The notes under the pieces were generated by a model. It had not been told where the DNA came from, ran no database searches, and saw nothing but the letters and a program-made list of their open reading frames with translations. The position numbers and the translations under genes are program-made. Source: Macrostomum lignano (Eukaryota). From it: a DNA stretch of 64,000 nucleotides. The stretch covers positions 37,296 through 101,295 of the forward strand of contig NIVC01003373.1 of NCBI GenBank assembly GCA_002269645.1, given 5' to 3'. The first letter of the stretch is position 1; each line of letters starts with the position of its first letter. Positions 19,265 to 57,955 of this stretch are shown here, one piece after another.

Positions 19265-19370
19265 GGATCCAGTATGTACAAAGGCTCCAGCTCACGCCGG
19301 GTGTACAGCGGCCCTGACTATCTCCATAGTCAGACATGTACACTCTCTGTGCAAGCAAGATTCAAATGTC
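19265..19370 (-). mobile_element. Fragment of the 45113-type SINE family
   Basis: GTGTACAGCGGCCCTGAC..CATGTACAC domain. Confidence 0.6.
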
Positions 19371-19377
19371 ACAGCTA

Positions 19378-20075
19378 CGAGTTGAGATTCAGTTGAGATT
19401 TAGTTAAGATTCAGTTGAGATTCAATTAAGATTCAGTTGAGATTTAGTTAAGATTCAGCTATGATTCAGTTGAGATTCAGCTGAGATTCAGTTGAGATTC
19501 AGTTAAGATTCAGCTGAGATTCAGTTGAGATTCAGTTGAGATTCAGCTGAGATTCAGTTCAGATTCAGTTCAGATTCAGTTCAGATTCAGTTCAGATTCA
19601 GTTCAGATTCAGTTCAGATTCAGTTCAGATTCAGTTCAGATTCAGTTCAGATTCAGTTCAGATTCAGTTCAGATTCACTTAAGATTCAATTGAGATTCAG
19701 TAAAGATTCAGTAAAGATTCAGTTGAGATTCAGTTGAGATTCAGCTGGGATTCAGTTGAGATTCAGCTGGGATTCAGTTGAGATTCAGTTGAGATTCAGC
19801 TGAGATTCGGTTGAGATTCAGCTGAGATTCAGTTGAAATTCAGCTGAGATTCAGCTGAGATTCAATTAAGATTCAGCTGAGATTCAGCTGAGATTCAATT
19901 AAGATTCAGTTGAGATTCAGCTGAGATTCAGCTGAGATTCAGCTGAGATTCAGCTGAGATTCAGCTGAGATTCAGCTGAGATTCAGTTGAGATTCAGCTG
20001 AGATTCAGATGAGATTCAGTTGAGATTCAGCTGAGATTCAGTTGAGATTCAGTTGAGATTCAGCTGAGATTCAGC
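19378..20075. repeat. 11-bp satellite (TTGAGATTCAG)n, second array
   Basis: Same unit and same position relative to SLC5 exon 1 as 853-2765. Confidence 0.95.
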
Positions 20076-20138
20076 TGACATCCACGTACATCAAAAGCAA
20101 GCTGTCAGTCTTGTAATCATTACATGACACAAACGTAC

Positions 20139-29954: not shown

Positions 29955-30132
29955 TATTTCAAGTGCATTTGCATTAATTTCGGGCTATATTGAAATCTCG
30001 GCTGGGGTCTGTTCGTGCAATTAACGCCCTTAAGGGCCAGGCACCAAGGCTACCGATAAATAAAGTTATAGGGCGGCTGTACTTGCTGTGTGTGCCTGCT
30101 CAGGTGAGTCGGCGGAATGGGCAGTAATGAGC
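29955..30132 (+). mobile_element. Partial copy of the 45113-type SINE
   Basis: Shared CATTAATTT..ATCTCGGCT..CGTGCAATTAACG and TGCCTGCTCAGG.GAGTCGGCGGAATGGGCAGTAATG. Confidence 0.75.
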
Positions 30133-34574: not shown

Positions 34575-35530
34575 GCGTGTCACTTCCGGTGTGGGACATC
34601 ATGTGTCACTTCCAGAGTGCGTGTGTGGGATCATTTGTCACTTCCCGTGTGCGGCATCATTTGTGTCACTTCCGGTGTGCGGCATCACTTGTGTCACTTC
34701 CGGTGTGCGGCATCACTTGTGTCACTTCCGGTGTGCGGCATCATTTGTGTCACTCCCGGTGTGCGGCATCATTTGTGTCATTTCCGGTGTGCGGCATCAT
34801 TTGTGTCACTTCCGGTGTGCGGCATCACTTGTGTCACTTCCGGTGTGCGGCATCACTTGTGTCAATTCCGGTGTGCGGCATCATTTGTGTCACTTCCGGT
34901 GTGCGGCATCACTTGTGTCACTTCCGGTGTGTGGCATCATTTGTGTCACTCCCGGTGTGCGGCATCACTTGTGTCACTCCCGGTGTGCGGCATCATTTGT
35001 GTCACTTCCGGTGTGCGGCATCACTTGTGTCACTTCCGGTGTGCGGCATCACTTGTGTCACTTCCGGTGTGCGGCATCACTTGTGTCACTTCCGGTGTGC
35101 GGCATCACTTGTGTCACTTTCGGTGTGCGGCATCACTTGTGTCACTCCCGGTGTGCGGCATCATTTGTGTCACTTCCGGTGTGCGGCATCATTTGTGTCA
35201 CTTCCGGTGTGCGGCATCACTTGTGTCACTTCCGGTGTGTGGCATCATTTGTGTCACTCCCAGTGTGCGGCATCATTTGTGTCACTTCCGGTGTGCGGCA
35301 TCACTTGTGTCACTTCCGGTGTGCGGCATCACTTGTGTCACTTCCGGTGTGTGGCATCATTTGTGTCACTCCCGGTGTGCGGCATCACTTGTGTCACTCC
35401 CGGTGTGCGGCATCATTTGTGTCACTTCCGGTGTGCGGCATCATTTGTGTCACTTCCGGTGTGCGGCATCACTTGTGTCACTTCCGGTGTGCGGCATCAT
35501 TTGTGTCACTCCCAGTGTGCGGCATTTTTT
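34575..35530. repeat. 28-bp minisatellite
   Basis: Unit GTGTCACTTCCGGTGTGCGGCATCA(C/T)TT, about 34 copies. Confidence 0.95.
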
Positions 35531-36216: not shown

Positions 36217-38963
36217 TCAGTTGGAGAGGTATGGCTTGACGATGTTCTGAGTAAACCAGGTGTCCGTGAACTGCAGGTGGTCGCCCTCGCAGGCCAGGAA
36301 CTTCAGCTTGCCGGCAGCATCCATCGCTTTCAGACCCAGACGGTCCTAATAATTTGCAAAATATTTTATTCATTTTTATGTATTGCACCATATTCTATAC
36401 TTCAACCTTTCCCTTGTTTTGTGTCCAATTAAGTTCATCTAGCTATTCAGTAAAATCCAGTCACTCAATGAACTTCAGTTCACTCCCAAACCCATCAGGC
36501 ACTCCAGGAGCTTCAGTTCACTCCCAAACCCATCAGGCACTCCAGGAGCTTCAGTTCACTCCCAAATCCAGTCACTCCATGAGCTTCAGTTCACTCCCAA
36601 ATCCAATCACTCCATGAGCTTCAGTTCACTCCCAAATCCAATCACTCCATGAGCTTCAGTTCACTCCCAAATCCAGTCACTCCATGAGCTTCAGTTCACT
36701 CCCAAATCCAATCACTCCATGAGCTTCAGTTCACTCCCAAATCCAATCACTCCATGAGCTTCAGTTCACTCCCAAATCCAGTCACTCCATGAGCTTCAGT
36801 TCACTCCCAAATCCAATCACTCCATGAGCTTCAGTTCACTCCCAAATCCAGTCACTCCAGGAGCTTCAGTTCACTCCCAAATCCAGTCACTCCATGAGCT
36901 TCAGTTCACTCCCAAATCCAGTCACTCCATGAGCTTCAGTTCACTACAAAATCCAGTCACTCCATGAGCTTCAGTTCACTCCCAAATCCAGTCACTCCAT
37001 GAGCTTCAGTTCACTCCCAAATCCAGTCACTCCATGAGCTTCAGTTCACTCCCAAATCCAGTCACTCCATGAGCTTCAGTTCACTCCAAAATCCAGTCAC
37101 TCCATGAGCTTCAGTTCACTCCCAAATCCAGTCACTCCATGAGCTTCAGTTCACTCCCAAATCCAGTCACTCCATGAGCTTCAGTTCACTCCCAAATCCA
37201 GTCACTCCATGAGCTTCAGTTCACTCCCAAATCCAGTCACTCCATGAGCTTCAGTTCACTCCCAAATCCAGTCACTCCATGAGCTTCAGTTCACTCCCAA
37301 ATCCAGTCACTCCATGAGCTTCAGTTCACTCCCAAATCCAGTCACTCCATGAGCTTCAGTTCACTACAAAATCCAGTCACTCCATGAGCTTCAGTTCACT
37401 CCCAAATCCAGTCACTCCATGAGCTTCAGTTCACTCCCAAATCAGAGGGAGCAATTCAAATCTTCAAAATCAGTTTAAATTACCATAAACAATACATGTA
37501 CTTAAATATCAAGTCGCTCACCTGAGTGTACAGAGTGGTATTTCGCAATGGTAGCACCGTCTTGTCCTGGCCAGGCTGATAGAACCCGAACCACTCGCTC
37601 TCCCGCGGCTGCACCATGCTGTCGCTGAGGAACTTCACCAGCACCAGATTCTTCAGGGTTTGCAGATTGGCTGCGTAAGACCGGTTTACAGTCTGAAGTT
37701 TTAAATCAAATTGAAGAAAAATGTACTTTTGTTGTCTGTGTATAAAAGTACACATTGATATGTCATACCAATTCATTGTTGATGTCGGCGATGAAAATTG
37801 ATTTCTGCTTATATTCCTCTTCGTTTAATGGATCGTGCCAGTATTGGGCTTGGATGAGGCTGGAGTGGATTTGAATATGATTAATTATGTTATAGTTTAT
37901 AGGCAGGCAAATCCCTTGTGCATTGATATTGTGATTCTTCATACAGTGCAGAACTTATTCAACGAATTGGCGCCTCATCCAATCAACTGGCGCCTCAGCC
38001 AATGATCTGGCGCCTAATACAATGAACTGGCGCCTCATCCAATCAACTGGCGCCTCATCCAATCAAATGGCGCCAAATACAATTAACTGGCGCCTCATCC
38101 AATCAACTGGCGCCTCATCCAATCAAATGGCGCCTCATCCAATAAACTGGCGCCTCATCCAATCAACTGGCGCCTCAGTCAATGATCTGGCGCCAAATAC
38201 AATGAACTGGCGCCTCATCCAATCAACTGGCGCCTCATCCAATCAAATGGCGCCTCATCCAATAAACTGGCGCCTCGCTAATAAACTGGTGCCTCATCCA
38301 ATCAACTGGCGCCTCATCTAATGAACTGGGGCCTCGCTAATGAACTGGGGCCTCGCTAATGAACTGGGGCCTCGCTAATGAACTGGGGCCTCGCTAATGA
38401 ACTGGGGCCTTGTCCAATTAAATGACACCCCATAAAATAGAATCTGAGGTCTGAGCTCACTTGTTCTGTACGAAGCTCACGTAAGCTCCCAGATTGAGCA
38501 GCTCGCGGACATAGTTGCACAGCGTTACATTGGTGCCCGGACACCTGGGGAAACCGTACACACCCTGGTGCTGGCCGCCGATGGACACCAGGTTTCGCAT
38601 TGGCGGGTTCGGGCAGCGCTGCACCAGAGCTCGGAGAAACTGAGCTCCCTGCGAGAACCCGATGGAGTTGTAGCCGCCCTTCAGTTTGGGATCGGCTCTG
38701 ATTGTCTGGCACACCTGTTCCACCTGCTTGTTGGCGTTGGACAGGAAGCCGTTCTCGATGTCTTCAACCATGTTGTTGCCGATCTGGACCGAGTAGACAT
38801 ACACACCCGGCAGCTGCTTCTCCAGCATGCGCTTGATGGCGCCCAGAGACAGCGGGTTGCAGCAGCTGTCGCCCATGCCGTGCCATAGCACTATGGGAGT
38901 GACAGCTTCGGTGATTGATAGCGAGCTGGCCAAGGCTAGGACTAGACAAGCGATAAGTCTCAT
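36217..38963 (-). CDS. PPT1: Palmitoyl-protein thioesterase 1, 297 aa; exons 38963-38461, 37859-37769, 37692-37522, 36345-36217
   Basis: Signal peptide, [16 protein letters not shown] nucleophile, [22 protein letters not shown]; phases sum to an intact 894-nt CDS. Confidence 0.97.
36455..37441. repeat. 35-bp minisatellite in PPT1 intron 3
   Basis: Unit CAGTCACTCCATGAGCTTCAGTTCACTCCCAAATC. Confidence 0.95.
37965..38410. repeat. 20-bp then 19-bp minisatellites in PPT1 intron 1
   Basis: AACTGGCGCCTCATCCAATC followed by AATGAACTGGGGCCTCGCT. Confidence 0.92.
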
Positions 38964-39861
38964 TGTGTCGGCTCTCTCTGTGTATGCATATGAGGGTTGT
39001 TGCGGATTTTAATAAACGTTTGTTTTAATGACAGCTACATGTATAATTACGAGTACTAAAATTTCCATTTAAAATCGCCAAATTTATTTTAATATTTGAG
39101 TGACGTTTGCACGAATGTACTGTTTTGCCATAGACAGGGGAAATTGTGGGAAATATTATATATATAATATCTTATATAGTATATCGTTCTTATATTACGA
39201 TACCATTAACTGTTTAAAGTACAAATAACATTTAAATTACACTACAGCAAAACTTTCATTACTTTTTTAACTTACCTTCAATTATGCTATACTGCGAAAT
39301 CTTCAATATCAAGATATTATGCGCAGGTCAATTACGGTTGAATTTCAGTTGGAATTTTTGCAGTAAATAGCTTATATGAAATTGCTGGTGGTTTCAAAGT
39401 TAATCGCAGGGTAAGAGAGCTGCCGTAGTGACTATGTACATTAATTTAGCCAGCAATGTACAGAGCTGCCCTGCAGCAAAAGCCAATTCTCTTTGACCAA
39501 CTGATACAGCAATAAGTGTCAAGCAATATAGCCCTATACTATTTTGTTTATCTACATGTAGTTTAGATTCTATTTAAATATAAACCAAATCTATATGTGT
39601 ATCTACATGTACATGTGTCTAACATTTTTGCAGTGAGTTATTTTGTTTGAATTTGATTTTGGCCGATATTATCAATTAGTGTAAATAATATGTATGACCT
39701 AAATCGCCACGGACCCACTCGCTAAATTCAAAGTCACACACCAAACTGCCAAAATTGTGACTGACACCCAGAACGAATAAAATTTAGCATAATTTGGCCT
39801 CAAAACTGTTGGCTTGCATTGATATAATTTCTCTGTGAACTATACATTTACTGAACTCTAG

Positions 39862-42800
39862 GATGGTGGCAAATCGGACATCAGGGAGGTGGAAAATCGG
39901 ACATCAGGGATCAGGGATGGCAAAGCGAACATCAGGGAGGCGGCAAATCGGACATCAGGGAGGTGGCAAATCGGACATCAGGGAGGTGGCAAATCGGACA
40001 TCAGGGAGGTGGCAAATCGGACATCAGGGAGGTGGCAAATCGGACATCAGTAAGGTGGCAAATCGGACATCAGGGAGGTGGCAATTAAATCGGACATCAG
40101 GGAGGTGGCAAATCGGACATCAGGGAGGTGGCAATTAAATCGGACATCAGGGAGGTGGCAATTAAATCGGACATCAGTAAGGTGGCAAATCGGACATCAG
40201 GGAGGTGGCAAATCGAACATCAGGGAGGTGGCAAATCGGACATCAGGGAGGTGGCAAATTGGACATCAGGGAGGTGGCAAATCGGACATCAGGGAGGTGG
40301 CAAATCGGACATCAGGGAGGTGGCAAATCGGACATCAGGGAGGTGGCAATTAAATCGGACATCAGGGAGGTGGAAAATCGGACATCAGGGATCAGAGATG
40401 GCAAAGCGAACATCAGGGAGGCGGCAAATCGGACATCAGGGAGGTGGCAAATCGGACATCAGGGAGGTGGCAATTAAATCGGACATCAGGGAGGTGGCAA
40501 TTAAATCGGACATCAGGGAGGTGGCAAATCGGACATCAGGGAGGTGGCAAATCGGACATCAGGGAGGTGGCAATTAAATCGGACATCAGGGAGGTGGCAA
40601 TTAAATCGGACATCAGTAAGGTGGCAAATCGGACATCAGAAAGGTGGCAATTAAATCGGACATCAAGGAGGTGGCAAATCGGACATCAGGAAGGTGGAAA
40701 ATCGGACATCAGGGATCAGAGATGGCAAAGCGAACATCAGGGAGGCGGCAAATCGGACATCAGGGAGGTGGCAAATCGGACATCAGGGAGGTGGCAAATC
40801 GGACATCAGGGAGGTGGCAAATCGGACATCAGGGAGGTGGCAATTAAATCGGACATCAAGGAGGTGGCAAATCGGACATCAGGGAGGTGGCAATTAAATC
40901 GGACATCAGGGAGGTGGCAATTAAATCGGACATCAGTAAGGTGGCAAATCGGACATCAGGGAGGTGGCAAATCGAACATCAGGGAGGTGGCAAATCGGAC
41001 ATCAGGGAGGTGGCAAATCGGACATCAGGGAGGTGGCAAATCGGACATCAGGGAGGTGGCAAATCGGACATCAGGGAGGTGGCAAATCGGACATCAGGGA
41101 GGTGGCAATTAAATCGGACATCAGGGAGGTGGAAAATCGGACATCAGGGATCAGAGATGGCAAAGCGAACATCAGGGAGGCGGCAAATCGGACATCAGGG
41201 AGGTGGCAAATCGGACATCAGGGAGGTGGCAAATCGGACATCAGGGAGGTGGCAAATCGGACATCAGTAAGGTGGCAAATCGGACATCAGGGAGGTGGCA
41301 ATTAAATCGGACATCAGGGAGGTGGCAAATCGGACATCAGGGAGGTGGCAATTAAATCGGACATCAGGGAGGTGGCAATTAAATCGGACATCAGTAAGGT
41401 GGCAAATCGGACATCAGGGAGGTGGAAAATCGGACATCAGGGATCAGAGATGGCAAAGCGAACATCAGGGAGGCGGCAATTAAATCGGACATCAAGGAGG
41501 TGGCAAATCGGACATCAGGGAGGTGGCAATTAAATCGGACATCAGGGAGGTGGCAATTAAATCGGACTTCAGTAAGGTGGCAAATCGGACATCAGGGAGG
41601 TGGCAAATCGAACATCAGGGAGGTGGCAAATCGGACATCAGGGAGGTGGCAAATCGGACATCAGGGAGGTGGCAAACCGACCATTAGGGAGGTGGCAAAT
41701 CGGACATCAGGGAGGTGGCAAATCGGAAATCAGGGAGGTGGCAATTAAATCGGACATCAGGGAGGTGGCAATTAAATCGGACATCAGGGAGGTGGCAATT
41801 AAATCGGACATCAGTAAGGTGGCAAATCGGACATCAGGGAGGTGGAAAATCGGACATCAGGGATCAGAGATGGCAAAGCGAACATCAGGGAGGCGGCAAT
41901 TAAATCGGACATCAAGGAGGTGGCAAATCGGACATCAGGGAGGTGGCAATTAAATCGGACATCAGGGAGGTGGCAATTAAATCGGACATCAGTAAGGTGG
42001 CAAATCGGACATCAGGGAGGTGGCAAATCGAACATCAGGGAGGTGGCAAATCGGACATCAGGGAGGTGGCAAATCGGACATCAGGGAGGTGGCAAACCGA
42101 CCATTAGGGAGGTGGCAAATCGGACATCAGGGAGGTGGCAAATCGGAAATCAGGGAGGTGGCAATTAAATCGGACATCAGGGAGGTGGAAAATCGGACAT
42201 CAGGGATCAGAGATGGCAAAGCGAACATCAGGGAGGCGGCAAATCGGACATCAGGGAGGTGGCAAATCGGACATCAGGGAGGTGGCAAATCGGACATCAG
42301 GGAGGTGGCAAATCGGACATCAGTAAGGTGGCAAATCGGACATCAGGGAGGTGGCAATTAAATCGGACATCAGGGAGGTGGCAAATCGGACATCAGGGAG
42401 GTGGCAATTAAATCGGACATCAGTAAGGTGGCAAATCGGACATCAGGGAGGTGGCAAATCGAACATCAGGGAGGTGGCAAATCGGACATCAGGGAGGTGG
42501 CAAATTGGACATTAGGGAGGTGGCAAATCGGACATCAGGGAGGTGGCAAATCGGACATCAGGGAGGTGGCAAATCGGACATCAGTAAGGTGGCAAATCGG
42601 ACATCAGTAAGGTGGCAAATCGGACATCAGGGAGGTGGCAATTAAATCGGACATCAGGGAGGTGGCAAATCGGACATCAGGAAGGTGGCAATTAAATCGG
42701 ACATCAGGGAGGTGGCAATTAAATCGGACATCAGTAAGGTGGCAAATCGGACATCAGAAAGGTGGCAATTAAATCGGACATCAAGGAGGTGGCAAATCGG

Positions 42801-43635
42801 ACATCAGGAAGGTGGCAAATCGGACATCAGGGAGGTGGCAAATCGGACATCAGTAAGGTGGCAAATCGGACATCAGGGAGGTGGCAATTAAATCGGACAT
42901 CAGGGAGGTGGCAAATCGGACATCAGGAAGGTGGCAATTAAATCGGACATCAGGGAGGTGGCAATTAAATCGGACATCAGAAAGGTGGCAAATCGGACAT
43001 CAGAAAGGTGGCAATTAAATCGGACATCAAGGAGGTGGCAAATCGGACATCAGGAAGGTGGCAAATCGGACATCAGGGAGGTGGCAAATTGGACATCAGG
43101 GAGGTGGCAAATCGGACATCAGGGAGGTGGCAAATCGGACATCAGGGAGGTGGCAAATCGGACATCAGGGAGGTGGCAAATCGGACATCAGGGAGGTGGA
43201 AAATTGGACATCAGGGAGGTGGCAAATCGGACATCAGTAAGGTGGCAAATCGGACATCAGGGAGGTGGCAATTAAATTGGACATCAGGGAGGTGGCAAAT
43301 CGGACATCAGGAAGGTGGCAATTAAATCGGACATCAGGGAGGTGGCAATTAAATCGGACATCAGTAAGGTGGCAAATCGGACATCAGAAAGGTGGCAATT
43401 AAATCGGACATCAAGGAGGTGGCAAATCGGACATCAGGAAGGTGGCAAATCGGACATCAGGAAGGTGGCAAATTGGACATCAGGGAGGTGGCAAATCGGA
43501 CATCAGGAAGGAGGCTAATCGGACATCAGGGAGGTGGCAATTAAATCGGACATCAGGGAGGTGGCAAATCGGACATCAGGAAGGCGGCAAATCGGACATC
43601 AGGAAGGTGATAAATCGGACATCAAGAAGGTGACA
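39862..43635. repeat. 3.8-kb 23/27-bp satellite
   Basis: Unit GGCAAATCGGACATCAGGGAGGT with recurring variants; source of all ORFs at 39863-43633. Confidence 0.97.
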
Positions 43636-43639
43636 AGCT

Positions 43640-43865
43640 AGACAATGGCCAATCCCCATTAGCGCCGAACTCCAAAGACACAGCGAGACATTCCTAACAA
43701 GTAGAAACTCGGGGCCGCTGTACACCCTGTGTGAGCTTGTGTACGAGCGCGTGCCTGCGCTATGTATGTCCTCAGGAGTCAGTGGAATGGGCAGAGTTGC
43801 CGTCAGTCCGGCAGGGTGCGGGTCGATGTCAACATAAACAACCTTTTAACAATATTTAATTAATT
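43640..43865 (+). mobile_element. Partial copy of the 45113-type SINE
   Basis: GGCCGCTGTACACCCTGTGTGAGC..CTCAGGAGTCAGTGGAATGGGCAG; absent from the paralogous junction near 55990. Confidence 0.7.
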
Positions 43866-44335
43866 ATTACAGACAGATCATTTGAGGATATTCGGAGTTC
43901 GATTCATCTTCAATAGCAGATTAGCGGTAGCAGATTCGATCTGCCAATATAACTCGCAATGTGTTGAGAAAGGAAGCGAAAAAATGGCATTGCTACTTCC
44001 AGTAATATGTACGGTATAAACTATGTAATAAGCTTTCAAAACACAAAAAAATTAATGCCCATTTTTTAAGCAGTCTTACATGTGCTTAGCTACACAAAAA
44101 CTTTCCAAATAAAAAGTTCTGTAAATTCTCAATAGCCACGAGTCGTAACTTCGCGGGTAAAAACATTTTGATGATCCAACAAAATGGTAGCTGTGTAACA
44201 GGTCGCTTATTATCGGTAGTCTCTGATTATAACAGTTTTTATTCCTGCTATCTTATGCTCACAAGCCAGAAAGAATTTCTAACACACTGGCCTCTGAGGG
44301 CCCTATTATGAGTGTGAGGCTCACATCTCCGAATC

Positions 44336-44676
44336 GGGTCCATGTGAATTGCCCGCGAGTGAATTGCCCGCGGAGTTTTTCCCGCCGAGGTTTGCCCGCA
44401 AAGCTTTTTTTTCCTGCAGTGCGTTATTTAGCCACGTGGCAGATTTTGTCTGCATTGCCTTCCCAATGCTTAGTACATGTACATTTAGATCTTGATAGAG
44501 ATTTACACGATCAAAACGTTTTGATAGTAACTGCATATCAAATGCATATTTTTTGGTAAAACTCCGCGGGCAACTCGCTCGCGAGCAAATTGCACTGCGG
44601 GAAAATCTCGGCGGGAAAAGCTCGCGGCGGGCAAATCTCGGCGGGCAATTCGTCTGCCGGCATTTTTCGTGCTCCC
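44336..44676. mobile_element. Mutator-like MITE, 341 bp
   Basis: 9-bp TSD CTCCGAATC at 44327-44335 and 44677-44685; GGG...CCC ends; inverted subterminal AATTGCCCGC repeats. Confidence 0.8.
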
Positions 44677-45112
44677 CTCCGAATCTCTCTGTAGCCGCAA
44701 TTTATTCAAGACAGTCAAACAAGCAAATTGGTTTAGTTGACAAAATAAAGAGCAATGCATAATTTGAGCGGGGCAGGACTATCGCTCGAGTAGTTTTATC
44801 TGTCCCGTTGTTAGGCAACCATATCACCCTCACCCTCCCCCCAAAGCATTGCTGAGAGTCTGTGTCACGTGACACGTGTCACGCGTTCGCAGGCTGCTGG
44901 CTTGGCCTTCGAACCTCAGCTTTGTTATCTGTCCTTTAGTGTAGGGCTGGTCTGGCTGGATTGCACCGGTCAAGAAAAGGGGAGAGCCTCGTTTTATCGC
45001 TTCGATCTAAGCACAATGAAGCTTATTTCATTTTCTACACTGTATAACCATATGCTGAAAGACTGTTTTTTGCACATTAATTAAGCCACCCGGAATTATC
45101 ATCAATTGTTCT

Positions 45113-45464
45113 TTTTTATTAGAGGCAGGGGGGTTGTGTGGCGCACTTTAAGCGACATTGGCACACAACCGGCGAGAGGCATTACTGCCCATTCCGCCGA
45201 CTCCCCTGAGCAGGCATACAAGCGCGCGGATACGTACGCAGGCACACGCTCACACAGGAGTGTACAGCGGCCCTAACTTTATATTATCGTTAGGCATGTA
45301 CACTTCACTGCGCCTTGGGGGTTGGCTCTCAAGGCCGTTAATTGCACGAGCAGAGCCAAGCCGAGATTCCAATTCAGCCCCAAATTAATGTGACTGCACT
45401 TGGAATCGAGCCTGGGTCGCTGGCACACCAGAGCAGCTGCGCTACCGCTAGGCTACGGCCCCCC
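45113..45464 (-). mobile_element. Full-length tRNA-derived SINE, 352 bp
   Basis: A box TAGCCTAGCGG, B box GGCTCGATTCC, AATAAAAAAG tail; TSD CATCAATTGTTCT at 45100-45112 and 45465-45477; empty site present in the paralog near 56775. Confidence 0.92.
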
Positions 45465-45591
45465 CATCAATTGTTCTGTTAGACAGCCATTGGTTTCGCT
45501 TTGCAGTGACGCTTAGGCGGTTGCCATGGCCAGTCACTGTGAAAGCTACTCACACGGATCGCCACGGGAAGGCTGCTGTCTGTGGATCCGC

Positions 45592-45629
<38 letters not shown>

Positions 45630-45686
45630 CAAAAAAAAAACTAGAGGAACTACTGAAGTAGCTTAAGTTTATTTGCAACTTATTTA

Positions 45687-46013
45687 CTAATTATCAGAGT
45701 TAAAATATTCAATAATATAATCAATGGTTTGAAATATCCTACTAGGATCTTCTCTGTAATAGTTCAATAAACGATTTCTTGCTACCTGAAAGATAGCAGT
45801 AAAAATCGTCGTAAAATTTCTCCCTCTCAACCTATCAGCAATTTCACGAATAATATCAATTCCTGTAATTATAAGATTTTGATTTTCTCTCAAAAAATTA
45901 AACAAATAAGTTGCAACGTTACTTAAGATGCTCCACATGTCGCCGTCGAGCCCAGAAGGCGTAACAAAAAAGCTTCCGTTACGACTTTGGTTTTCGACAG
46001 TAGTGTTAGACAT
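45687..46013 (-). CDS. Orphan 108-aa intronless protein, paralog A
   Basis: ORF preserved without gaps against the paralog at 57084-57413; TATA and CCAAT upstream; AATAAA at 45673-45668. Confidence 0.8.
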   Translation of the reverse strand: MSNTTVENQSRNGSFFVTPSGLDGDMWSILSNVATYLFNFLRENQNLIITGIDIIREIADRLRGRNFTTIFTAIFQVARNRLLNYYREDPSRIFQTIDYIIEYFNSDN

Positions 46014-46056
46014 GTTTGCCGATCCTCTAATTACTTCTGCACTCGCCCAAAGCTAG

Positions 46057-46109
46057 TTTTATAATGAACTTCGCTTATCTCTGTCCTCGGCAAGGTCTTC
46101 TCCCATTGG
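46057..46109 (-). promoter_or_regulatory. Pol II core promoter of orphan paralog A
   Basis: CCAAT at 46109-46105 and TATAAAA at 46063-46057; order and spacing conserved in paralog B. Confidence 0.75.
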
Positions 46110-46689
46110 CTGGGCTGCACAGCCACACGCAGAGGCCAAGCAATAAATGTATCGCATACAGCAGCCTTATCAGCACTAGCGCAAATTCTGTGTTTATCAA
46201 TGCTGTGTTCACCAATGCTGTGCTCACCAATGCTGTATTCACCAATGCTGGTGCCTAAAAATAAAAACGTGTAATCAGATTGCCTTACAAGTATTTATTA
46301 CAAAATTAATTTTAATTTATTTACAAAAATTAAAATCAAAATATCTTTATGATGCGGCAAGTCCAGATATGGGATCCCAAAGGTAGGACAGGTAGGGGAG
46401 AAAGGTAGAGAGAGTATATGGTAGTCGGAACTTCTCACCGTTTGCTTGTCACTGACTTTCATTTTCATTGAATTTATCCAACATTTCTATTGCCTAGCCA
46501 TCATATACAGGTTCATTCACACTTCCGACCCGTTTTTGCTCATGGGCGCAGGAACATTTCAAACACTGGGGGGGGGGCAGGTTCAGTGGCGGATTTAGGG
46601 GGGCACAGGGCACGCCCCCCCCGTCGAGTGTGATTTTTTATATGGAAAATGCACATTATCATGTACCGATTATTTTCAGGATCGGTGTT

Positions 46690-47450
46690 GTCAGCACTCA
46701 TTTTAGCGCCAAAAGCATCCATTTTAGCGCTGCAGGCACTCATTTTAGCGCTGCAGGCACTCATTTTAGCGCTGCAGGCACTCATTTTAGCGCTGCAGGC
46801 ACTCATTTTAGCGCTGCAGGCACTCATTTTAGCGCTGCAGGCACTCATTTTAGCGCTGCAGGCACTCATTTTCGCGCTGCAGGCTCTCATTTTAGCGCCG
46901 CAGGCACTCATTTTAGCGCCGCAGGCACTCATTTTAGCGCCACAGGCACTCATTTTAGCGCCACAGGCACTCATTTTAGCGCCGCAGGCACTCATTTTAG
47001 CGCTGCAGGCACTCATTTTAGCGCTGCAGGCACTCATTTTGGCGCTGCAGGCACTCATTTTAGCGCCGCAGGCACTCATTTTAGCGCCACAGGCACTCAT
47101 TTTAGCGCCGCAGGCACTCATTTTAGCGCCGCAGGCACTCATTTTAGCGCTGCAGGCACTCATTTTGGCGCTGCAGGCACTCATTTTAGCGCCACAGGCA
47201 CTCATTTTAGCGCCACAGGCACTCATTTTAGCGCCGCAGGCACTCATTTTAGCGCTGCAGGCACTCATTTTAGCGCCGCAGGCACTCATTTTAGCACTGC
47301 AGGCACTCATTTTAGCGCTGCAGGCACTCATTTTAGCGCTGCAGGCACTCATTTTGGCGCTGCAGGCACTCATTTTAGCGCCGCAGGCACTCGTTTTAGC
47401 GCTGCAGGCACTCAGTTTGTCGCCGCTTCAGTGAGGCACTCATTTTAGCG
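46690..47450. repeat. 21-bp minisatellite
   Basis: Unit GCACTCATTTTAGCGCTGCAG. Confidence 0.96.
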
Positions 47451-47995: not shown

Positions 47996-48614
47996 TTTTC
48001 CTCAGCTTTGCTGACTGGGCGCTTGCATAGGCTAGAAGCAAAATCCTGTCTTGCAGCAGAAAATATTTCACTTCAAAATGTTGCAGAGTTTCAAAAAATG
48101 TCAAGAATAAGCAATGCTGGATTTGTCAAAAACTCCCAGTGAATTTCGCTTGCAGAAGCAAAAGGTTTTCGAAATGCTATGGAAAGAGTCTGGTGAGCAA
48201 CAAATCCATGAGCAGGTGGTGCGTAGGGTCAAGGCTTAGCGTCAAAGGCCTGGCTGAGCATGCTACCTGTCGGAGTCACCTAACCGAGGCAGGCGGAGGT
48301 CAGACTGGACACTGGGGTTCCAGTGAGGTGTCTCCCGAAGACGATTACCAAACAAAAGCTTCAGATTCGCAGCAAGGACAAACCGAAAAGGGCAAAAGTG
48401 CCACAGGTGGCACCTCAAGGCAGACACTGTAGAAAAACAAGATAAGTGGAGCCACCGAAGCTGCACCTGAGCTCAGATCAAGCAAGGTCTTCCCGATAAG
48501 AGAGTCGACCGATAAGGGAGCTCACCTGAGAAGAGCAGTCATGCAGCCCCAAGAATCAGCTGACACTGACGTCAATAGTCGTAAGCAACACAGCTGCATT
48601 CGAGTTAGCTCAGA

Positions 48615-50445
48615 GATGGGCTGATTGAGAGTGCTCAGAGTAGGGCTGATTGAGAGTGCTCAGAGTAGGGCTGATTGAGAGTGCTCAGAGTAGGGCTGAT
48701 TGAGAGTGCTCAGAGTAGGGCTGATTGAGAGTGCTCAGAGTAGGGCTGATTGAGAGTGCTCAGAGTAGGGCTGAATGGGAGTGCTCAGAGTAGGGCTGAA
48801 TGGGAGTGCTCAGAGTAGGGCTGAATGGGAGTGCTCAGAGTAGGGCTGATTGAAAGTGATCAGAGTAGGGCTGATTGAGAGTGCTCAGAGTAGGGCTGAA
48901 TGGGAGTGCTCAGAGTAGGGCTGAATGGGAGTGCTCAGAGTAGGGCTGAATGAGAGTGCTCAGAGTAGGGCTGATTGAAAGTTATCAGAGTAGGGCTGAT
49001 TGAGAGTGCTCAGAGTAGGGCTGAATGGGAGTGCTCAGAGTAGGGCTGATTGAAAGTGATCAGAGTAGGGCTGAATGGGAGTGCTCAGAGTAGGGCTGAA
49101 TGGGAGTGCTCAGAGTAGGGCTGATTGAAAGTGATCAGAGTAGGGCTGAATGGGAGTGCTCAGAGTAGGGCTGATTGAGAGTGCTCAGAGTAGGGCTGAA
49201 TGGGAGTGCTCAGAGTAGGGCTGATTGAAAGTGATCAGAGTAGGGCTGATTGAGAGTGCTCAGAGTAGGGCTGAATGGGAGTGCTCAGAGTAGGGCTGAA
49301 TGGGAGTGCTCAGAGTAGGGCTGAATGGGAGTGCTCAGAGTAGGGCTGATTGAAAGTGATCAGAGTAGGGCTGATTGAGAGTGCTCAGAGTAGGGCTGAA
49401 TGGGAGTGCTCAGAGTAGGGCTGAATGGGAGTGCTCAGAGTAGGGCTGAATGGGAGTGCTCAGAGTAGGGCTGATTGAAAGTGATCAGAGTAGGGCTGAT
49501 TGAGAGTGCTCAGAGTAGGGCTGAATGGGAGTGCTCAGAGTAGGGCTGATTGAAAGTGATCAGAGTAGGGCTGAATGGGAGTGCTCAGAGTAGGGCTGAT
49601 TGAGAGTGCTCAGAGTAGGGCTGAATGGGAGTGCTCAGAGTAGGGCTGAATGGGAGTGCTCAGAGTAGGGCTGAATGGGAGTGCTCAGAGTAGGGCTGAA
49701 TGGGAGTGCTCAGAGTAGGGCTGAATGGGAGTGCTCAGAGTAGGGCTGAATGAGAGTGCTCAGAGTAGGGCTGAATGGAAGTGCTCAGAGTAGGGCTGAA
49801 TGAGAGTGCTCAGAGTAGGGCTGATTGAGAGTGCTCAGAGTAGGGCTGAATGAGAGTGCTCAGAGTAGGGCTGGCTGAATGAGAGTGCTCAGAGTAGGGC
49901 TGAATGGGAGTGCTCAGAGTAGGGCTGATTGAGAGTGCTCAGAGTAGGGCTGATTGAGAGTGCTCAGAGTAGGGCTGAATGGGAGTGCTCAGAGTAGGGC
50001 TGATTGAAAGTGATCAGAGTAGGGCTGAATGAGAGTGCTCAGAGTAGGGCTGATTGAGAGTGCTCAGAGTAGGGCTGAATGGGAGTGCTCAGAGTAGGGC
50101 TGAATGGGAGTGCTCAGAGTAGGGCTGAATGGGAGTGCTCAGAGTAGGGCTGAATGGGAGTGCTCAGAGTAGGGCTGAATGGAGTGCTCAGAGTAGGGCT
50201 GAATGAGAGTGCTCAGAGTAGGGCTGAATGGGAGTGCTCAGAGTAGGGCTGAATGAGAGTGCTCAGAGTAGGGCTGATTGAGAGTGCTCAGAGTAGGGCT
50301 GAATGAGAGTGCTCAGAGTAGGGCTGGCTGAATGAGAGTGCTCAGAGTAGGGCTGAATGGGAGTGCTCAGAGTAGGGCTGAATGAGAGTGCTCAGAGTAG
50401 GGCTGATTGAGAGTGCTCAGAGTAGGGCTGAATGGGAGTGCTCAG
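48615..50445. repeat. 1.8-kb 25-bp minisatellite
   Basis: Unit GAGTGCTCAGAGTAGGGCTGA(TTGA/ATGG). Confidence 0.97.
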
Positions 50446-50814
50446 AGAAGAATCCAAAGCTAATGCTAGAGAAAAACTCACCGTTAAGTAAGTTAAGTAA
50501 CGATTCTCAGCAGTTTGGTACACATTCTGGTTTGAAGGGCATTATGAGGCTTATGATCTGCTGCGAGTGTGAGGCCATTTCATTATTTTTTAGGTGAATA
50601 ACGCCTCGGTGAATGCAAGCGACTGGTTGATTGGTGCTTGATAAATTATTGAAACAGTTTCACTGAAAACTTCTAACTAAACCAGACTGCCATTTTGGTA
50701 TTAAATCTATTTCAGTTTTCATATTCTCCCTAAACTGGTTCTGTGTTATGCTATTGTTAGCACATAGACTGTTGAAGTACCTTGATACTCAGTTTCTTTT
50801 TCCTCAGTTCCTTT

Positions 50815-51561: not shown

Positions 51562-53211
51562 ATGTCGGTACCTTTGCAACTGCCACCGCCGGAGCCTTTT
51601 GATAAACAGAAAGAGCCACATAACCTATCGGCAAGGTGGGCAGAATTGGCCAACCGTCTCAAGTGCTTCGTCACTTCATGCGGCATCGAGGACCCTACTC
51701 TACTTTTTTCCATTCGCAGTTAATTGAGCCTTTATCCAGATGAACCTTTTGGGAATGAACCCAGGCAGTAATCAACTAAATGTTCCTGCGAGAATAGAAA
51801 ATGTTAGAACTAGTCATGAAGTTGCTATAAATTCATGGAAGCAAGCAATCCATGTCCTGCGAAGTTGAAAGTCCTCAGGTTTGAATTCTGATGGAGAATG
51901 GGGAAGCTGTGTTGAGCTAGAATCTGATGGTGAATGGGGAAACTGTGCTAAGCTTGGATCTGATGAAGCAGAGAGCGGCAATCATTGCACAAGAGTTTTG
52001 CATTGGTTTCCACAGAAGTATTGAAGCACATTGGAGTTCATTCATTAGCTGAGGCAGGGTTCGTGTCCTCAGATTTGCCGGCTTGGCACTCGCATTGACT
52101 GAAAGCAAAGTCCTGACAGTTGAATTGGGATGCATTACAGCACAAATACTTCACTTCATCATGTTGCAGAATTGCAATAAATGCCAAGCATTAGCAATAT
52201 GTTGGCTTCTCAAACCTCCCAGTGAGTTTGGCTAAAGTTTTTTTTCGGAATCGTATCGAAAGACTCTGCGCCTCATGTCAGTTTTTTGCTCTCCAAGAGC
52301 AGTAAAAGTCTCTTAAAGCAGATAAGCACTTATCAGTGCCCCGTGCATAATGGTGAAGCAATCTTAAAGTATGAACCTTTTGATAATTCATGACTGCCCC
52401 CAAGCCGAATCATGTGCATTTGAGTTTCTTATAAGTTAAACTTCTTCAGCTGATAACTTGTCTGCACATTTTCCATGCATTAGCCATGAGTACTTGGTTT
52501 TCATGATTTTATTAGAATGGAAAATCAGATCCATGACTTGCAGAGGCTGAGAGGCTGTCTTGGAGTGGAGCCTTTTGTTTCAAAGGCCTGGCTAAGCATG
52601 TTAGCTCGTACCTGTCGGAGTCACCTGACCGAGGCAGGCAGAGGTCGAACTGGACACTGGAGTGTAAGCGAGATGTCTCACGAAGACGATGACCAAACAA
52701 GAGCTTCAGATTCGCAGCAAGGACAGACCGAAACAAAAACAAAAGAGCCGCAGGTCGCGCATAAAATCAGACCCAGGAGAAAACAAAATAAGTTGAGACA
52801 CCGAAGCCGCAACGCAGCTCAGAGCAAGCTCTTCCCAATAAGAGAGTCGCAAAGAGCTGACCTGAGGAGAGCAGCTAGCCAAATGTAGCCCCAGGAATCA
52901 GCTGACACTGACGTCAAGGGTCGAAAGCAACACTGGGCAAGAGAGCTGCATGAGCAGCTGTTACACTGTTGACTATTTTGAGCAGCTGTGCGATCTTGTG
53001 CTGTTCAGAAATCCCTTGCTGCTTTCGCCTTGCATGTGATCATGATTAAGCCAGCTGGCTCCACTTTATAATACTATAAGAACTTATTAAAGATAAAGTT
53101 GCTTCTTTTGTTTGAATTTGAAGCCGAAAAAATCTGAGAAATTACTTTAGCTCTTATTATGCAAAATTTAAAATTAAGTGTGTAAAATTCTAATCGGGTT
53201 GAGCTTATAAG

Positions 53212-54590: not shown

Positions 54591-55011
54591 CTCGTAAATG
54601 ATCCATACCCGACTAGATCGGATGCTGAGATAATAAAACCGAGTAAAAAATAATAAAACTGGCCGAGTGACGTTGCTGTGTAAAGGTTTAATCAAAGAAT
54701 GCTACTGTAAGTAGAGCAATGCACACATGCGCAGCAAAACTTAAGCTATGAATCAAGTTACTATTTATATCTAACAAATGACACCCGCACCTCCTACACG
54801 CATTGCTCTGCACAGCTCGCAGTGCTGCACGGTCTGTGGATCATATGTGTAGCAGCCTATGAGATTCAGCACAGCCATCCCGTGGCAGTCGCAGCCCGCA
54901 GTCCTGCTTCCAGCCTTCGCTGAGGAGTAGTAGCTGTGCACCAGTTGGAGGCCAGGGTCGCAAAAGCCGAATCTGTTGCCAGCAGGCGTGTCAGCGATAG
55001 GCAGCACAGGG

Positions 55012-55990
55012 AGGGGGCAAATCGGACATCAGGGAGGTGGCAATTCGGACATCAGGGAGGTGGCAAATCGGACATCAGGGAGGTGGAAATTAAATCGGAC
55101 ATCAAGGAGGTGGCAATTAAATCGGACATCAGGGAGGTGGCAATTAAATCGGACATCAGGGAGGTGGCAATTAAATCGGACATCAAGGAGGTGGCAATTA
55201 AATCGGACATCAGGGAGGTGGCAATTAAATCGGACATCAAGGAAGTGGCAATTAAATCGGACATCAGGGAAGTGGCAATTAAATCGGACATCAAGGAGGT
55301 GGCAATTAAATCGGACATCAGGGAGGTGGCAAATAGGACATCAGGGAGGTGGCAATTAAATCGGACATCAGGGAGGTGGCAATTAAATCGAACATCAGGG
55401 AGGTGGCAATTAAATCGGACATCAGGGAGGTGGCAATTAAATCGGACATCAGGGAGGTGGCAAATCGGACATCAGGGAGGTGGCAATTAAATCGGACATC
55501 AGGGAGGTGGCAATTAAATCGGACATCAGGGAGGTGGCAATTAAATCGGACATCAGGGAGGTGGCAATTAAATCGGACATCAGGGAGGTGGCAATTAAAT
55601 CGGACATCAAGGAGGTGGCAATTAAATCGGACATCAGGGAAGTGACAAATCGGACATCAGGGAAGTGACAAATCGGACATCAGGGAGCTGGCAATTAAAT
55701 CGGACATCAGGGAGGTGGCACATCGGACATCAGGGAGGTGGCACATCGGACATCAGGGAGGTGGCACATCGGAAATCAGGGAGGTGGCACATCGGACATC
55801 AGGGAGGTGGCACATCGGAAATCAGGGAGGGGGCAAATCGGAAATCAGGGAGGTGGCACATCGGAAATCAGGGAGGTGGCACATCGGAAATCAGGGAGGT
55901 GGCACATCGGAAATCAGGGAGGTGGCACATCGGACATCAGGGAGGTGGCACATCGGAAATCAGGGAGGTGGCAAATCGGAAATCAGGGAG
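55012..55990. repeat. Second array of the 23/27-bp satellite
   Basis: Same unit as 39862-43635, followed by the same unique flank. Confidence 0.96.
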
Positions 55991-57083
55991 TTCGCTTCAT
56001 CTTCAATAGCAGATTAGCAGTAGCAGATTCTCCCAATATAACTTGCAATGTGTCGAGTAGGAAAGAGAAAAAAATGGTTTCGCTACTTCCAGTAATATGT
56101 ACTGTATAAGCTACATGTATGTAATAAGCTTTCATACTACTTAAAAAATTAATGCACATTTTTAAGCAGTCTGCATAGCTACACAACAAATAACAAATAA
56201 AGAGTCGTAACTTTGCGGGAAAAACATTTATTGATGATCCCACAAAATGGTACTGTAACAGGTTATCATAGGTAGTCTCTGAAGGCCTCTCACGCCAGCT
56301 ACCTTACACGCCTGCTACCCCTCTGCCTCGGCAGACAGAAACTTCGAAGAGCTGAGACAAGTCCTTCTCTTAGGTTTGAGCTCAAACTTTACTATACTCG
56401 GCAGTGGAGAAGCATTGTGCTGGGGGCAGTGTTGGGGTGGTGGCGTGATATTTTTTCGCCCCACCCATCTTGTTTGCTTGTTTGCATATATAGCTAGTTA
56501 GATGAATTAACACAGAGAGGGCACGCTGGGTCTGTGTGGCTGTTTTAGTGCAGGCAAATGGGTGGGTCTAACATGAAATATTTATGATAAGTTTGTAATA
56601 GCATGTACTCGTATCAGCATCAGCAACCTTTGATTTATACTGTGCAGTTTTAGTGAAAATTGGTTAATGAAAGTGAACCTCGTTCATGAACCTTATTTGT
56701 TTTTTGTACACCGTGTATAACCATATGCTGAAAGACAGTTTTTTGCACATTAATTAAGCCACCCGGAATTATCATCAATTGTTCTGTTAGACAGCCTTTG
56801 GTTTCGCTTTGCAGTGACGCTTAGGCGGTTGCCATGGCAGTCACTGTGAAAGCTACTCACACGGATCGCCACGGGAAGGCTGCTGTCTGTGGATCCGCGC
56901 ACTACTGTTTTTTGTTGCTTTTGTTGTTTTTATTGTTTTTTTTTGTTTTTTGCACATTAACAGAATGCAAATAAACAAACATAAACAAAAACAAGAAACA
57001 TGCAGAAAGGAGATGGAGAGTAAAAAAGCAGCAGTGCGAGAGCTACCTCAAGTACGAGCATATACAGTTTGTTTGCAATTTAT

Positions 57084-57413
57084 TCAATGATTATTACCAG
57101 AGTTTAAATATTGAGTAATATTGTCAATGGTTTGAAATATCCTACTGGGATCTTCTCTAAAATAGTTCCAGAAACGATCACCCGCCACCCAAAAGACAGC
57201 AACAGAAAGTCTATTAAAATTTCCGCTTCTTAATCCATTAAAAATATCACGGAAAAAATAAACAACTGCGAATATCGTAGTCGGATTTGCTCTTAAATAA
57301 TTACATGAATAAATTGCAACGTTACTGAAGATACTCCACATGTCGCTGTCGCGCACAAAACGCGCAGCAGCAGAGCTTCCGCTAAGGCTTTGGATTTCGA
57401 CAGCGGAGGACAT
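57084..57413 (-). CDS. Orphan 109-aa intronless protein, paralog B
   Basis: Shares DMWSI.SNVA and NY.REDPSRIFQTID with paralog A; AATAAA overlaps the stop codon. Confidence 0.8.
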   Translation of the reverse strand: MSSAVEIQSLSGSSAAARFVRDSDMWSIFSNVAIYSCNYLRANPTTIFAVVYFFRDIFNGLRSGNFNRLSVAVFWVAGDRFWNYFREDPSRIFQTIDNITQYLNSGNNH

Positions 57414-57466
57414 GTGTGATAGTGTGATAGTAGCACTAAAACTTCTTCACTCGCCCAAAGCTGTAA

Positions 57467-57518
57467 TTTTATAAGAAACGTCTCTTCTCAGCCCTCGGCA
57501 ATGGTCTGCTCCCATTGG
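57467..57518 (-). promoter_or_regulatory. Pol II core promoter of orphan paralog B
   Basis: CCAAT at 57518-57514 and TATAAAA at 57473-57467. Confidence 0.75.
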
Positions 57519-57724
57519 CTGGGTCACACAGCCATTCGCTGCAAGGCCAAGCAGTACGAGCCATCGCACTGCAGGCTTCTCAACACTATAGCGGAATTTC
57601 GTCTATTGCTCACGCTTGTACAGTGATAAAAAAAATTCAGAGAAATGAGGCCTCAATTGATGAGGAGAGAGTGAAGAGTAATCGCTAGAGTTGGATTAGA
57701 ATTGGAACACATCTGAAGGCTCAA

Positions 57725-57955
57725 ATTCTGTGTTCACCAATACTGCATTCACCAATTCTGTGTTCACCGATGCTGTGTTCACCGATGCTGTGTTCACCAA
57801 TACTGTGTTCACCAATACTGTGTTCACCAATGCTGTGTTCACCAATGCTGTGTTCACCAATACTGTGTTCACCAATACTGTGTTCACCAATACTGTGTTC
57901 ACCAATACTGTGTTCACAGATGCTGTGTTCACCAATGCTGTGTTCACCAATGCTT
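57725..57955. repeat. 15-bp minisatellite
   Basis: Unit CTGTGTTCACCAAT(A/G); only about 4 copies at the paralogous 46185-46250. Confidence 0.92.

Follow-up and report, generated by a model that had tools for sequence, protein, structure and literature searches.

Self-cleaving ribozymes of the hepatitis delta virus (HDV) type keep about five conserved nucleotides (PMC4870747), and the G of their loop L3 is important (PMC3774820). Several retrotransposons carry such a ribozyme at their head, and excerpts of the reports on these elements describe them as co-transcribed from an upstream cellular promoter (PMC3774820; PMC3414825; PMC4035085). In a different field, lysine-desert and lysine-less proteins avoid ubiquitylation, according to portions of two published accounts (PMC10169902; PMC10665810). 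Here we describe a locus that touches on both subjects in the flatworm Macrostomum lignano, whose genome has a documented heavy load of simple and tandem repeats (PMC5730564). Within a stretch of 64,000 nucleotides of contig NIVC01003373.1 (the window; positions are counted from its first letter), we found two paralogous, lysine-free open reading frames (ORFs), A and B, each followed on the same strand by a candidate HDV-like ribozyme. We propose, with about even confidence, that A and B are two tandem paralogues of a lineage-restricted gene transcribed by RNA polymerase II (Pol II), each accompanied by a ribozyme candidate that likely comes from the head of a retroelement.

Two lysine-free reading frames with shared promoter motifs

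The two copies and their putative transcription signals are the following:

45687-46013, minus strand: ORF A, 108 amino acids (aa), lysine-free, with a predicted disordered N-terminal tail and four predicted helices
57084-57413, minus strand: ORF B, 109 aa, lysine-free, paralogue of A with the same four helices predicted
46014-46109, minus strand: promoter-like region of A, 81.7% identical to that of B, motifs identical
57414-57518, minus strand: promoter-like region of B, same motif set as A
46105-46109, minus strand: CCAAT of A
57514-57518, minus strand: CCAAT of B
46057-46063, minus strand: TATAAAA of A
57467-57473, minus strand: TATAAAA of B
46040-46054, minus strand: AGCTTTGGGCGAGTG of A, 15/15 identical to B
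57448-57462, minus strand: AGCTTTGGGCGAGTG of B
45668-45673, minus strand: AATAAA of A, located 13 nt past the stop codon, with a U-rich tract behind it
57079-57084, minus strand: AATAAA of B, overlapping the TGA stop codon

A preliminary description of this DNA, made from the letters alone, had reported an intronless-looking pair that keeps its promoter motifs, and this holds for both copies: CCAAT, TATAAAA, AGCTTTGGGCGAGTG, AATAAA and the open frame are all present on the minus strand of A and of B. The spacing of 41-42 nt given there for CCAAT and TATAAAA fits copy A (41 nt), but is 40 nt in copy B. The CCAAT box is embedded in CCCAGCCAATGGGAG, which is identical in the two copies at 15 of 15 positions, and the start codon stands in the context ACATGTC in both. 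The promoter motif has no third occurrence in the window.

The predicted proteins are 49% identical over 106 aa (tblastn within the window, E = 2e-26), and the ORFs are 75.0% identical as DNA in a gap-aware alignment. As described earlier, the last 84 aa align free of gaps at about 54% identity (45 of the 84 columns are invariant, 53.6%). Neither tblastn nor blastn found further copies of the ORF in the window, and the "family" that had been suggested therefore consists, within the reach of the tblastn search of the window, of only two members.

The view of A and B as orphans devoid of a known domain was upheld, as no protein or structure library that we searched yielded a match. A word-index search of 5.8 billion proteins retrieved no homologue, a HMMER profile had 0 matches among 1.84 billion representatives, and exact look-ups of both proteins found none. 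There was no significant match in Pfam (best E = 0.11), PHROGs (best E = 0.047) or the PDB sequences (best E = 0.35), and Foldseek, queried with the AlphaFold2 model, returned generic helical bundles only (best E = 0.17).

AlphaFold2 places four helices in A, at residues 19-43, 45-64, 69-88 and 90-105 (mean predicted local distance difference test score, pLDDT, 66.6), and the same four-helix layout in B (mean pLDDT 53); the confidence is modest for both. The models leave the N-terminal ~22 residues, which are polar (S/T/N/E/Q), disordered. Helices and the lack of a signal peptide had also been noted before; by inspection, with no dedicated predictor, we saw no signal peptide and no transmembrane or strongly membrane-active segment, and the hydrophobic stretches are each broken by R, D, E, N or G.

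Because of the CCAAT and TATA boxes, the lack of an intron, the tandem copies, the length of ~100 aa and the 3' hairpin described below, we considered a replication-dependent histone-type gene. This was rejected on the absence of lysine, a net charge of -2 (A) or +1 (B) and the lack of a Pfam histone match. As to retrogene features, copy A has an A32 tract ~45 nt past AATAAA; there is, however, a promoter-like region upstream, and we saw no flanking target-site duplication, nor did the searches above bring up a parent gene or homologue. A search for terminal inverted repeats around the unit found U/A tracts only.

Evidence for selection on the reading frames

The openness of the frame, the lack of indels, the hydrophobic patterning and the absence of lysine are statistically shown to be held by selection. 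There is no in-frame lysine codon in either copy (0 in A and 0 in B), where base composition predicts 5-6 lysines in A and 3-4 in B (P 0.002-0.05 per copy); the triplets AAA and AAG occur out of frame 16 times in A and 12 times in B. Arginine contributes 9-10 residues, mostly encoded by AGA. Under random neutral substitution the frame survived in 2-12% of trials, or ~4% when the substitutions were split over two lineages. The ORFs differ by two indels, both of 3 nt, compared with 12.5 expected at the rate of the alignable flanks (33 indels per 857 aligned nt; P = 3.5e-4). Finally, 12 of the 40 amino acid replacements switch between the hydrophobic and polar classes, so that class is kept more often than under random pairing (permutation P = 0.011). 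All of these tests compare two copies of common ancestry, which are not independent samples. The promoter and poly(A) motifs shared by A and B and the four-helix layout predicted for both proteins point towards translation as well. We lean towards reading the ORF pair as a translated gene, weighed below against observations that speak for non-functional frames.

Divergence between the copies is uneven

To describe how the copies differ, divergence was counted as substitutions only, with one gap-aware aligner and defined segments, a procedure that in simulation inflated identity by 1-3 points. On this measure A and B are 84.3% identical in the distal upstream region, 81.7% from CCAAT to ATG, 75.0% in the ORF, 77% in the 3' untranslated region, 83% in the first 120 nt past the conserved block described below, and 90.9% far downstream. 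The pooled alignable flanks differ at 128 of 857 positions (14.9%), and the whole ORF at 81 of 321 (25.2%; Fisher P = 7e-5 versus the flanks).

Two parts of the ORF exceed the flanks, namely codons 43-83 (36.6% divergence, P = 9e-8) and codons 1-22 (28.6%, P = 0.007), and the differences are clustered in the core (scan permutation P = 0.003). This agrees with the earlier remark that a central stretch is mostly replaced while the non-coding flanks are more alike (36.6% versus 14.9%). The ends of the protein, which had been called conserved, turned out not to be specially so; their divergence of 13.3% equals the flank level (P = 0.70). The tail and the central helices are over-diverged, and the ends are at the local baseline.

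Nonsynonymous divergence in the core is 0.35, compared with 0.15 in the flanks (P = 4.5e-6). Omega is 0.79 in the core and 2.9 in the N-terminal segment, the latter from few sites. Synonymous divergence amounts to 0.28 at codons with identical amino acids and to 0.41 in the core (Nei-Gojobori).

The duplication as a whole contains three levels of divergence (1.5%, ~15% and ~35%), which suggests later gene-conversion tracts on top of any selection. A mosaic of conversion tracts of differing age fits the pattern equally well. The pattern may reflect diversifying selection, with multiple hits blurring the synonymous estimate, or it may come from an old duplication in which gene conversion later made the flanks partly alike again but spared the core.

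A conserved block downstream of both frames contains an HDV-like ribozyme candidate

Past the stop codon, at a distance of ~96 nt in A and ~186 nt in B and on the same strand, lies a block of ~197 nt in which the copies differ at three positions (98.5% identity, against a baseline of ~85%). This block, absent from the preliminary description, is better conserved than any other part of the duplication. Its coordinates, and those of the ribozyme candidate within it, are as follows:

45592-45466 and 45112-45041, minus strand: conserved block of A, in two parts that are 99.2% and 97.3% identical to B
56899-56714, minus strand: conserved block of B
45481-45591, minus strand: HDV-like (CPEB3-type) ribozyme candidate of A, with G1 at 45591 and the candidate catalytic C at 45498
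56789-56898, minus strand: HDV-like ribozyme candidate of B, with G1 at 56898 and the candidate catalytic C at 56806

The first 110-111 nt of the block can be drawn as a nested double pseudoknot. P1 (GCGGAUC/GAUCCGU) has 7 bp and a G1-U pair in both copies, P2 (AGACAGC/GCUGUCU) likewise has 7 bp, and P3 (GCC/GGC, 3 bp) closes the loop L3, UUCCCGU. The long P4 consists of CUUU.../...AAAG extended by CAGUGAC/GUCACUG. J4/2 opens with CGAA at ribozyme position 94 in A and 93 in B, and GU follows directly after P1'. G1-Y, U19, C21-G36, C23, G24 and C-R-R-A of a published descriptor (PMC6326823) are all found in both copies. In copy A the cut is predicted between 45592 and 45591.

Minimum free energy (MFE) folding recovers P1 with P3, as well as P4. 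Our structural descriptor matches these two sites only in the window, compared with 2 matches in 200 dinucleotide-shuffled windows, a figure that serves as a rough guide only because the descriptor was refined after the candidate had been seen; a version that demanded at least 5 continuous bp at the base of P4 missed both sites. Among 4227 Rfam families, two ribozyme models align to the block and both are HDV-like: the CPEB3 model at 11.6-16.6 bits (threshold 35; the best score, 16.6 with E = 0.071 in a 311-nt scan, is in copy B) and the HDV-F-prausnitzii model at 14.8-14.9 bits (threshold 44). Such weak scores are expected for a new lineage, because HDV-like ribozymes keep few nucleotides (PMC4870747). 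The only other match in the narrow scans was the bacterial small RNA model CrcZ (16.3 bits), lying mostly on the A-rich tract upstream of the cleavage site and not on the folded block. Metagenome contigs searched for the exact pattern of the ribozyme core gave 0 matches. A hammerhead ribozyme was rejected, since inspection by eye showed no CUGANGA core and Rfam gave no match.

Several points weigh against a ribozyme. The Rfam scores are far under the gathering thresholds, J1/4 is long (8 nt), and two near-identical copies provide no covariation. The descriptor was tuned with the candidate in view, the near-identity of the copies covers dispensable parts as well (see below), and no reverse transcriptase was found nearby. 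Of the two C-G pairs that the published descriptor places in P1.1, only C21-G36 can form, positions 20 and 37 being U and U; Infernal aligns a CPEB3 consensus that likewise has this U and GU, and the deviation therefore resembles a variant of the CPEB3 type more than a failure. Taking these points together with the fold, we think that the block probably self-cleaves as an HDV-like ribozyme.

Hairpins before the predicted cut and the tail behind the ribozyme candidate

The ribozyme candidate is bordered on its 5' side by a hairpin and on its 3' side by a tail with a short ORF:

45593-45640, minus strand: hairpin of A, U16 followed by an encoded A32, ending one base before the predicted cleavage site
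56899-57038, minus strand: hairpin of B, long and imperfect, with U-rich and A-rich arms (~140 nt), its 3' arm ending at the predicted cleavage site
45041-45112, minus strand: block tail of A, ~72 nt, 97.3% identical to B, cut off from the ribozyme by a short interspersed nuclear element (SINE)
56714-56788, minus strand: block tail of B, contiguous with the ribozyme
56714-56775, minus strand: short ORF after the ribozyme in B, 41 aa
45041-45102, minus strand: short ORF after the ribozyme in A, 25 aa

The copy B hairpin has an MFE of -38.9 kcal/mol (z = -2.7; of 200 shuffles, 3 reached an equally stable fold). The U-rich and A-rich tracts that form the hairpins between AATAAA and the cleavage site differ greatly between A and B in both sequence and length.

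Behind P2, an AUG at a distance of 13 nt opens the short ORF, for which we found no homologue; A and B share its first 20 residues, MIIPGGLINVQKTVFQHMVI. In A as in B the tail runs into an A-rich stretch. We found no convincing target-site duplication, and the block occurs in two copies in the 64 kb.

The conserved block has homologous flanks on both sides, and independent insertions of a mobile element at one site in both copies were rejected on this ground; for the same reason, the block either predates the duplication or was homogenised within it. We also rejected the idea that selection on the ribozyme alone accounts for the 98.5% identity. Near-identity extends over parts that are dispensable for catalysis, the distal P4 and the 72-nt tail being equally conserved, and this points to conversion or recent origin rather than to ribozyme selection. 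The identity of the block is more simply put down to recent gene conversion or to concerted evolution.

Genomic setting

A comparison of the window with itself showed that the ORF pair is not free-standing, but is embedded in a colinear tandem segmental duplication:

39857-46540 (approximate): duplicated segment A, comprising a minisatellite, unique DNA, the conserved block, the ORF, the promoter, a 15-bp minisatellite and unique DNA
55007-58232 (approximate): duplicated segment B, colinear with segment A
45113-45465, minus strand: SINE with a tRNA head, 353 bp with an A-tail, in copy A only, splitting the conserved block
38457-38963, minus strand: PPT1 exon (Pfam PF02089, 3e-43; best match Macrostomum lignano PPT1, 84% identity)
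17716-18177, minus strand: PSMD3/Rpn3 exon with a PCI domain
25692-26090, plus strand: exon with a PDZ domain

In the three exons listed, 52-80% of third codon positions are G or C, in contrast to 30-33% in A and B. A 23/27-bp minisatellite array forms the start of both duplicated segments. The SINE is specific to copy A and its insertion postdates the segmental duplication; it is flanked by a perfect 13-bp target-site duplication, AGAACAATTGATG, at 45466-45478 and 45100-45112, which suggests that the insertion is recent. Fragments of the same SINE lie near 10479-10554, 19273-19344, 29956-30129 and 43688-43794. Between the two gene copies, a second short duplication (48242-48591 versus 52580-52933, 79% identity) indicates repeated duplication in this interval.

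The window is eukaryotic and dense in minisatellites with periods of 11-65 bp; examples are the arrays at 1-2770, 19380-20078, 26103-26960, 31273-32771 and 34577-35525, and further ones at 36453-37443, 39865-43636, 46694-47426, 48608-50447 and 55019-55974. An 11-bp array is present twice, at 1-2770 and 19380-20078, and a 24-bp minisatellite at 15996-16623, CCTAAACCATAACACAAACCCTAA, has an internal telomere-like core, CCCTAA. An ORF of 169 aa at 13915-14424 on the plus strand looks like a fragment of a mariner-type transposase, but gave no Pfam match at E <= 0.001. Across the whole window, a tRNA scan and Rfam at its gathering thresholds returned nothing, and nor did a scan for bacterial promoters and terminators, which is irrelevant for a eukaryote.

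Proposed explanation

In the scheme that we favour, a promoter made up of CCAAT and TATA boxes and of the conserved motif near the initiator would give rise to a short single-exon mRNA. Its product would be a cytosolic protein of ~108 aa that has a disordered N-terminal tail of ~22 aa rich in Ser/Thr/Asn, four amphipathic helices and no lysine; our best guess is a small, ubiquitin-resistant binding protein with a helical-bundle fold. Selection would preserve an open, indel-free frame, its hydrophobic pattern and the avoidance of lysine, while the tail and the two central helices would be nearly free to change or be driven to change. The copies were presumably born with the segmental duplication of several kb, and gene-conversion tracts would have been laid over them later.

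Judging from its structure, the ribozyme candidate would cleave any read-through RNA on the 5' side of G 45591 or G 56898. It is likeliest to be the 5' head of a remnant of a ribozyme-processed retroelement, co-transcribed from the promoter of the gene; for this speak the start of the block exactly at the cut site and the AUG 13 nt past P2. Against it, the DNA downstream of the ribozyme has no long ORF and yielded none for a reverse transcriptase or endonuclease, the element has no clear 3' end, and we found no homologue of the short ORF. An origin as a retroelement head nevertheless seems to us most likely, and is favoured over a role in forming the 3' end of the gene itself.

Alternative explanations

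A number of observations would suit frames that are non-functional, that is, chance or decaying frames in AT-rich duplicated DNA, left by a dead gene or by a sequence that never was translated, whose uneven similarity stems from conversion tracts and local differences in mutation rate, and these same observations weigh against translation. The Nei-Gojobori omega across the whole gene is 0.77, which is not clearly below 1. The 81 nucleotide differences are spread evenly over codon positions 1/2/3 (26/30/25; chi-square 0.52), and out-of-frame translations of A and B resemble each other as much as, or more than, the real frame. The GC content of third codon positions is 30-33% in the ORFs compared with 46-80% in the conserved exons of neighbouring genes in the same window, and the ORFs are more AT-rich than the non-coding DNA around them. 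No homologue came to light in any library searched, even among 1.84 billion representatives, the three discrete divergence levels suit conversion tracts, and several of our tests (the lysine count and the region boundaries) were picked after inspection of the data. We nonetheless regard non-functional frames as rather unlikely: indels are depleted and in frame (P = 3.5e-4), both frames have outlasted ~25% divergence (~4% of trials), hydrophobic class is kept (P = 0.011), neither copy has an in-frame lysine codon, and the CCAAT, TATA, initiator-proximal and AATAAA motifs are retained. If the gene is real, its N-terminal tail and central helices could be under positive selection, for example in a reproductive, defensive or selfish-element conflict. 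Nonsynonymous divergence in the core is more than twice that of local non-coding DNA, omega reaches 2.9 at the few sites of the N-terminal segment, the ends are at flank level, and Macrostomum reproduction genes evolve fast and lose detectable homologues, as stated in excerpts of two studies (PMC7336406; PMC8662610). The earlier label of rapid diversification stands in so far as the core exceeds the flanks; its extension to positive selection does not follow, since omega is 0.77 and synonymous sites are raised as well. Indeed, measured against the gene's own neutral sites omega is below 1, because synonymous divergence (pS 0.28-0.41) is as high as nonsynonymous divergence. The comparison comprises two sequences only, and for the defensive, membrane-active or reproductive effector suggested earlier we saw, by inspection, no supporting signal peptide or membrane segment. 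Positive selection is in our judgement unlikely.

With regard to the conserved block, a reading as no ribozyme at all would make it a small RNA of the Pol III type on the plus strand that ends in a T-run, or a conversion tract with a coincidental fold. Read on the plus strand the block does run into T32 in A and, nine bases later, T6 in B, the z-score of the whole block is only -1.3, and the Rfam scores stay under threshold. On the other hand, no Rfam family matches the plus strand, the tail contains an internal T6 on that strand, and the G1-U pair of P1 would there become a C-A mismatch. A chance structure is expected at ~0.01 per window, and less often with the L3 and J4/2 nucleotides fixed, so that we doubt this reading. 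A self-cleaving block could instead form one unit with the gene, the 3' end of the mRNA being made by self-cleavage past the hairpin and A-tract, instead of or beside polyadenylation. That in both copies the hairpin stops exactly at the predicted cut despite its differing sequence, that the ribozyme block is the best conserved of the duplication, and that it lies 96-186 nt past the stop on the same strand would all agree with such a unit. A canonical AATAAA at or after the stop, with a U-rich downstream element in A, is however enough for an ordinary 3' end; A/U tracts are low-complexity DNA prone to expansion by slippage; conservation continues for 72 nt past the ribozyme, where the unit does not need it; and in copy A a SINE sits just past the ribozyme. 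We consider such a unit distinctly improbable, and still more so the fullest form of this idea, in which the transcript of a lysine-free gene would be ended, or its read-through processed, by its own ribozyme, kept nearly identical in both paralogues while the coding sequence diverges, with the cut exactly at the foot of an encoded U/A-rich hairpin. The retroelement head remains our preferred source of the ribozyme candidate.

Comparison with known systems

What the locus means depends on which of its parts are real. If the ORFs are translated, they represent a new protein family with no lysine, a strict frame and one half that changes faster than neighbouring non-coding DNA, and would offer a small and tractable case for how orphan genes persist and what is gained by avoiding lysine. 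If the block self-cleaves, it is a gene-proximal, CPEB3-type HDV-like ribozyme from a free-living flatworm, and would make it possible to test directly if such ribozymes work for a retroelement, for the 3' end of a host gene, or for both. If the two are coupled, the locus would have a natural mRNA 3' end in an animal that is defined by a ribozyme and protected by a hairpin. If neither the gene nor the ribozyme is true, what is left is a commonplace segmental duplication that is diverging within a genome full of repeats.

The protein pair may be likened to the taxonomically restricted reproduction genes of Macrostomum, which belong to the same lineage, have undetectable homologues and include close copies that are highly diverged, according to parts of the published work (PMC7336406; PMC8662610; PMC10092323). 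Seminal-fluid candidates often have a signal peptide, whereas A and B by inspection have none. As in lysine-less proteins, A and B contain no lysine despite an AT-rich coding sequence; by analogy, they may avoid ubiquitylation.

MALAT1-type RNAs acquire their 3' ends by structure-specific RNase P cleavage beside an encoded A-rich tract. The A/B locus similarly encodes an A-rich tract directly before the predicted cut, able to pair with the U-rich tract that precedes it; it differs in that the proposed cut is made in cis by a ribozyme and not by RNase P, and in having a canonical AATAAA upstream.

Among ribozymes, the candidate comes closest to the HDV-like ones and above all to the CPEB3 ribozyme (RF00622), with which it shares the helix order P1, P2, P3/L3, P1', J1/4, P4, J4/2, P2', a 7-bp P1 that starts with G1-U, a 3-bp P3, a J4/2 opening with CGAA, the GU after P1', and a P1.1 made of one C-G pair and U-U. 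L3 has 7 nt in both, the consensus UUCACGU in CPEB3 and UUCCCGU in the candidate. The two differ in that P4 of the candidate is much longer (~48 nt), its J1/4 has 8 nt and its scores are far below the Rfam thresholds; moreover, the CPEB3 ribozyme is mammalian and lies in an intron of CPEB3, whereas the candidate lies beside an orphan gene in a flatworm. In ribozyme-headed non-long-terminal-repeat retrotransposons (R2, RTE, L1Tc/NARTc and R2-derived elements) the ribozyme is likewise the exact 5' boundary of the conserved block; here too the site suits co-transcription from an upstream promoter, and an AUG follows 13 nt past the ribozyme. Unlike these elements, the candidate has no reverse transcriptase or endonuclease ORF downstream and no clear 3' tail or target-site duplication, and within the 64 kb it occurs in two copies only, at homologous positions of one duplication. 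Taken singly, a duplicated gene of restricted taxonomic range and a ribozyme of the HDV type are both of known kinds, and it is only if their coupling is functional that the combination is new.

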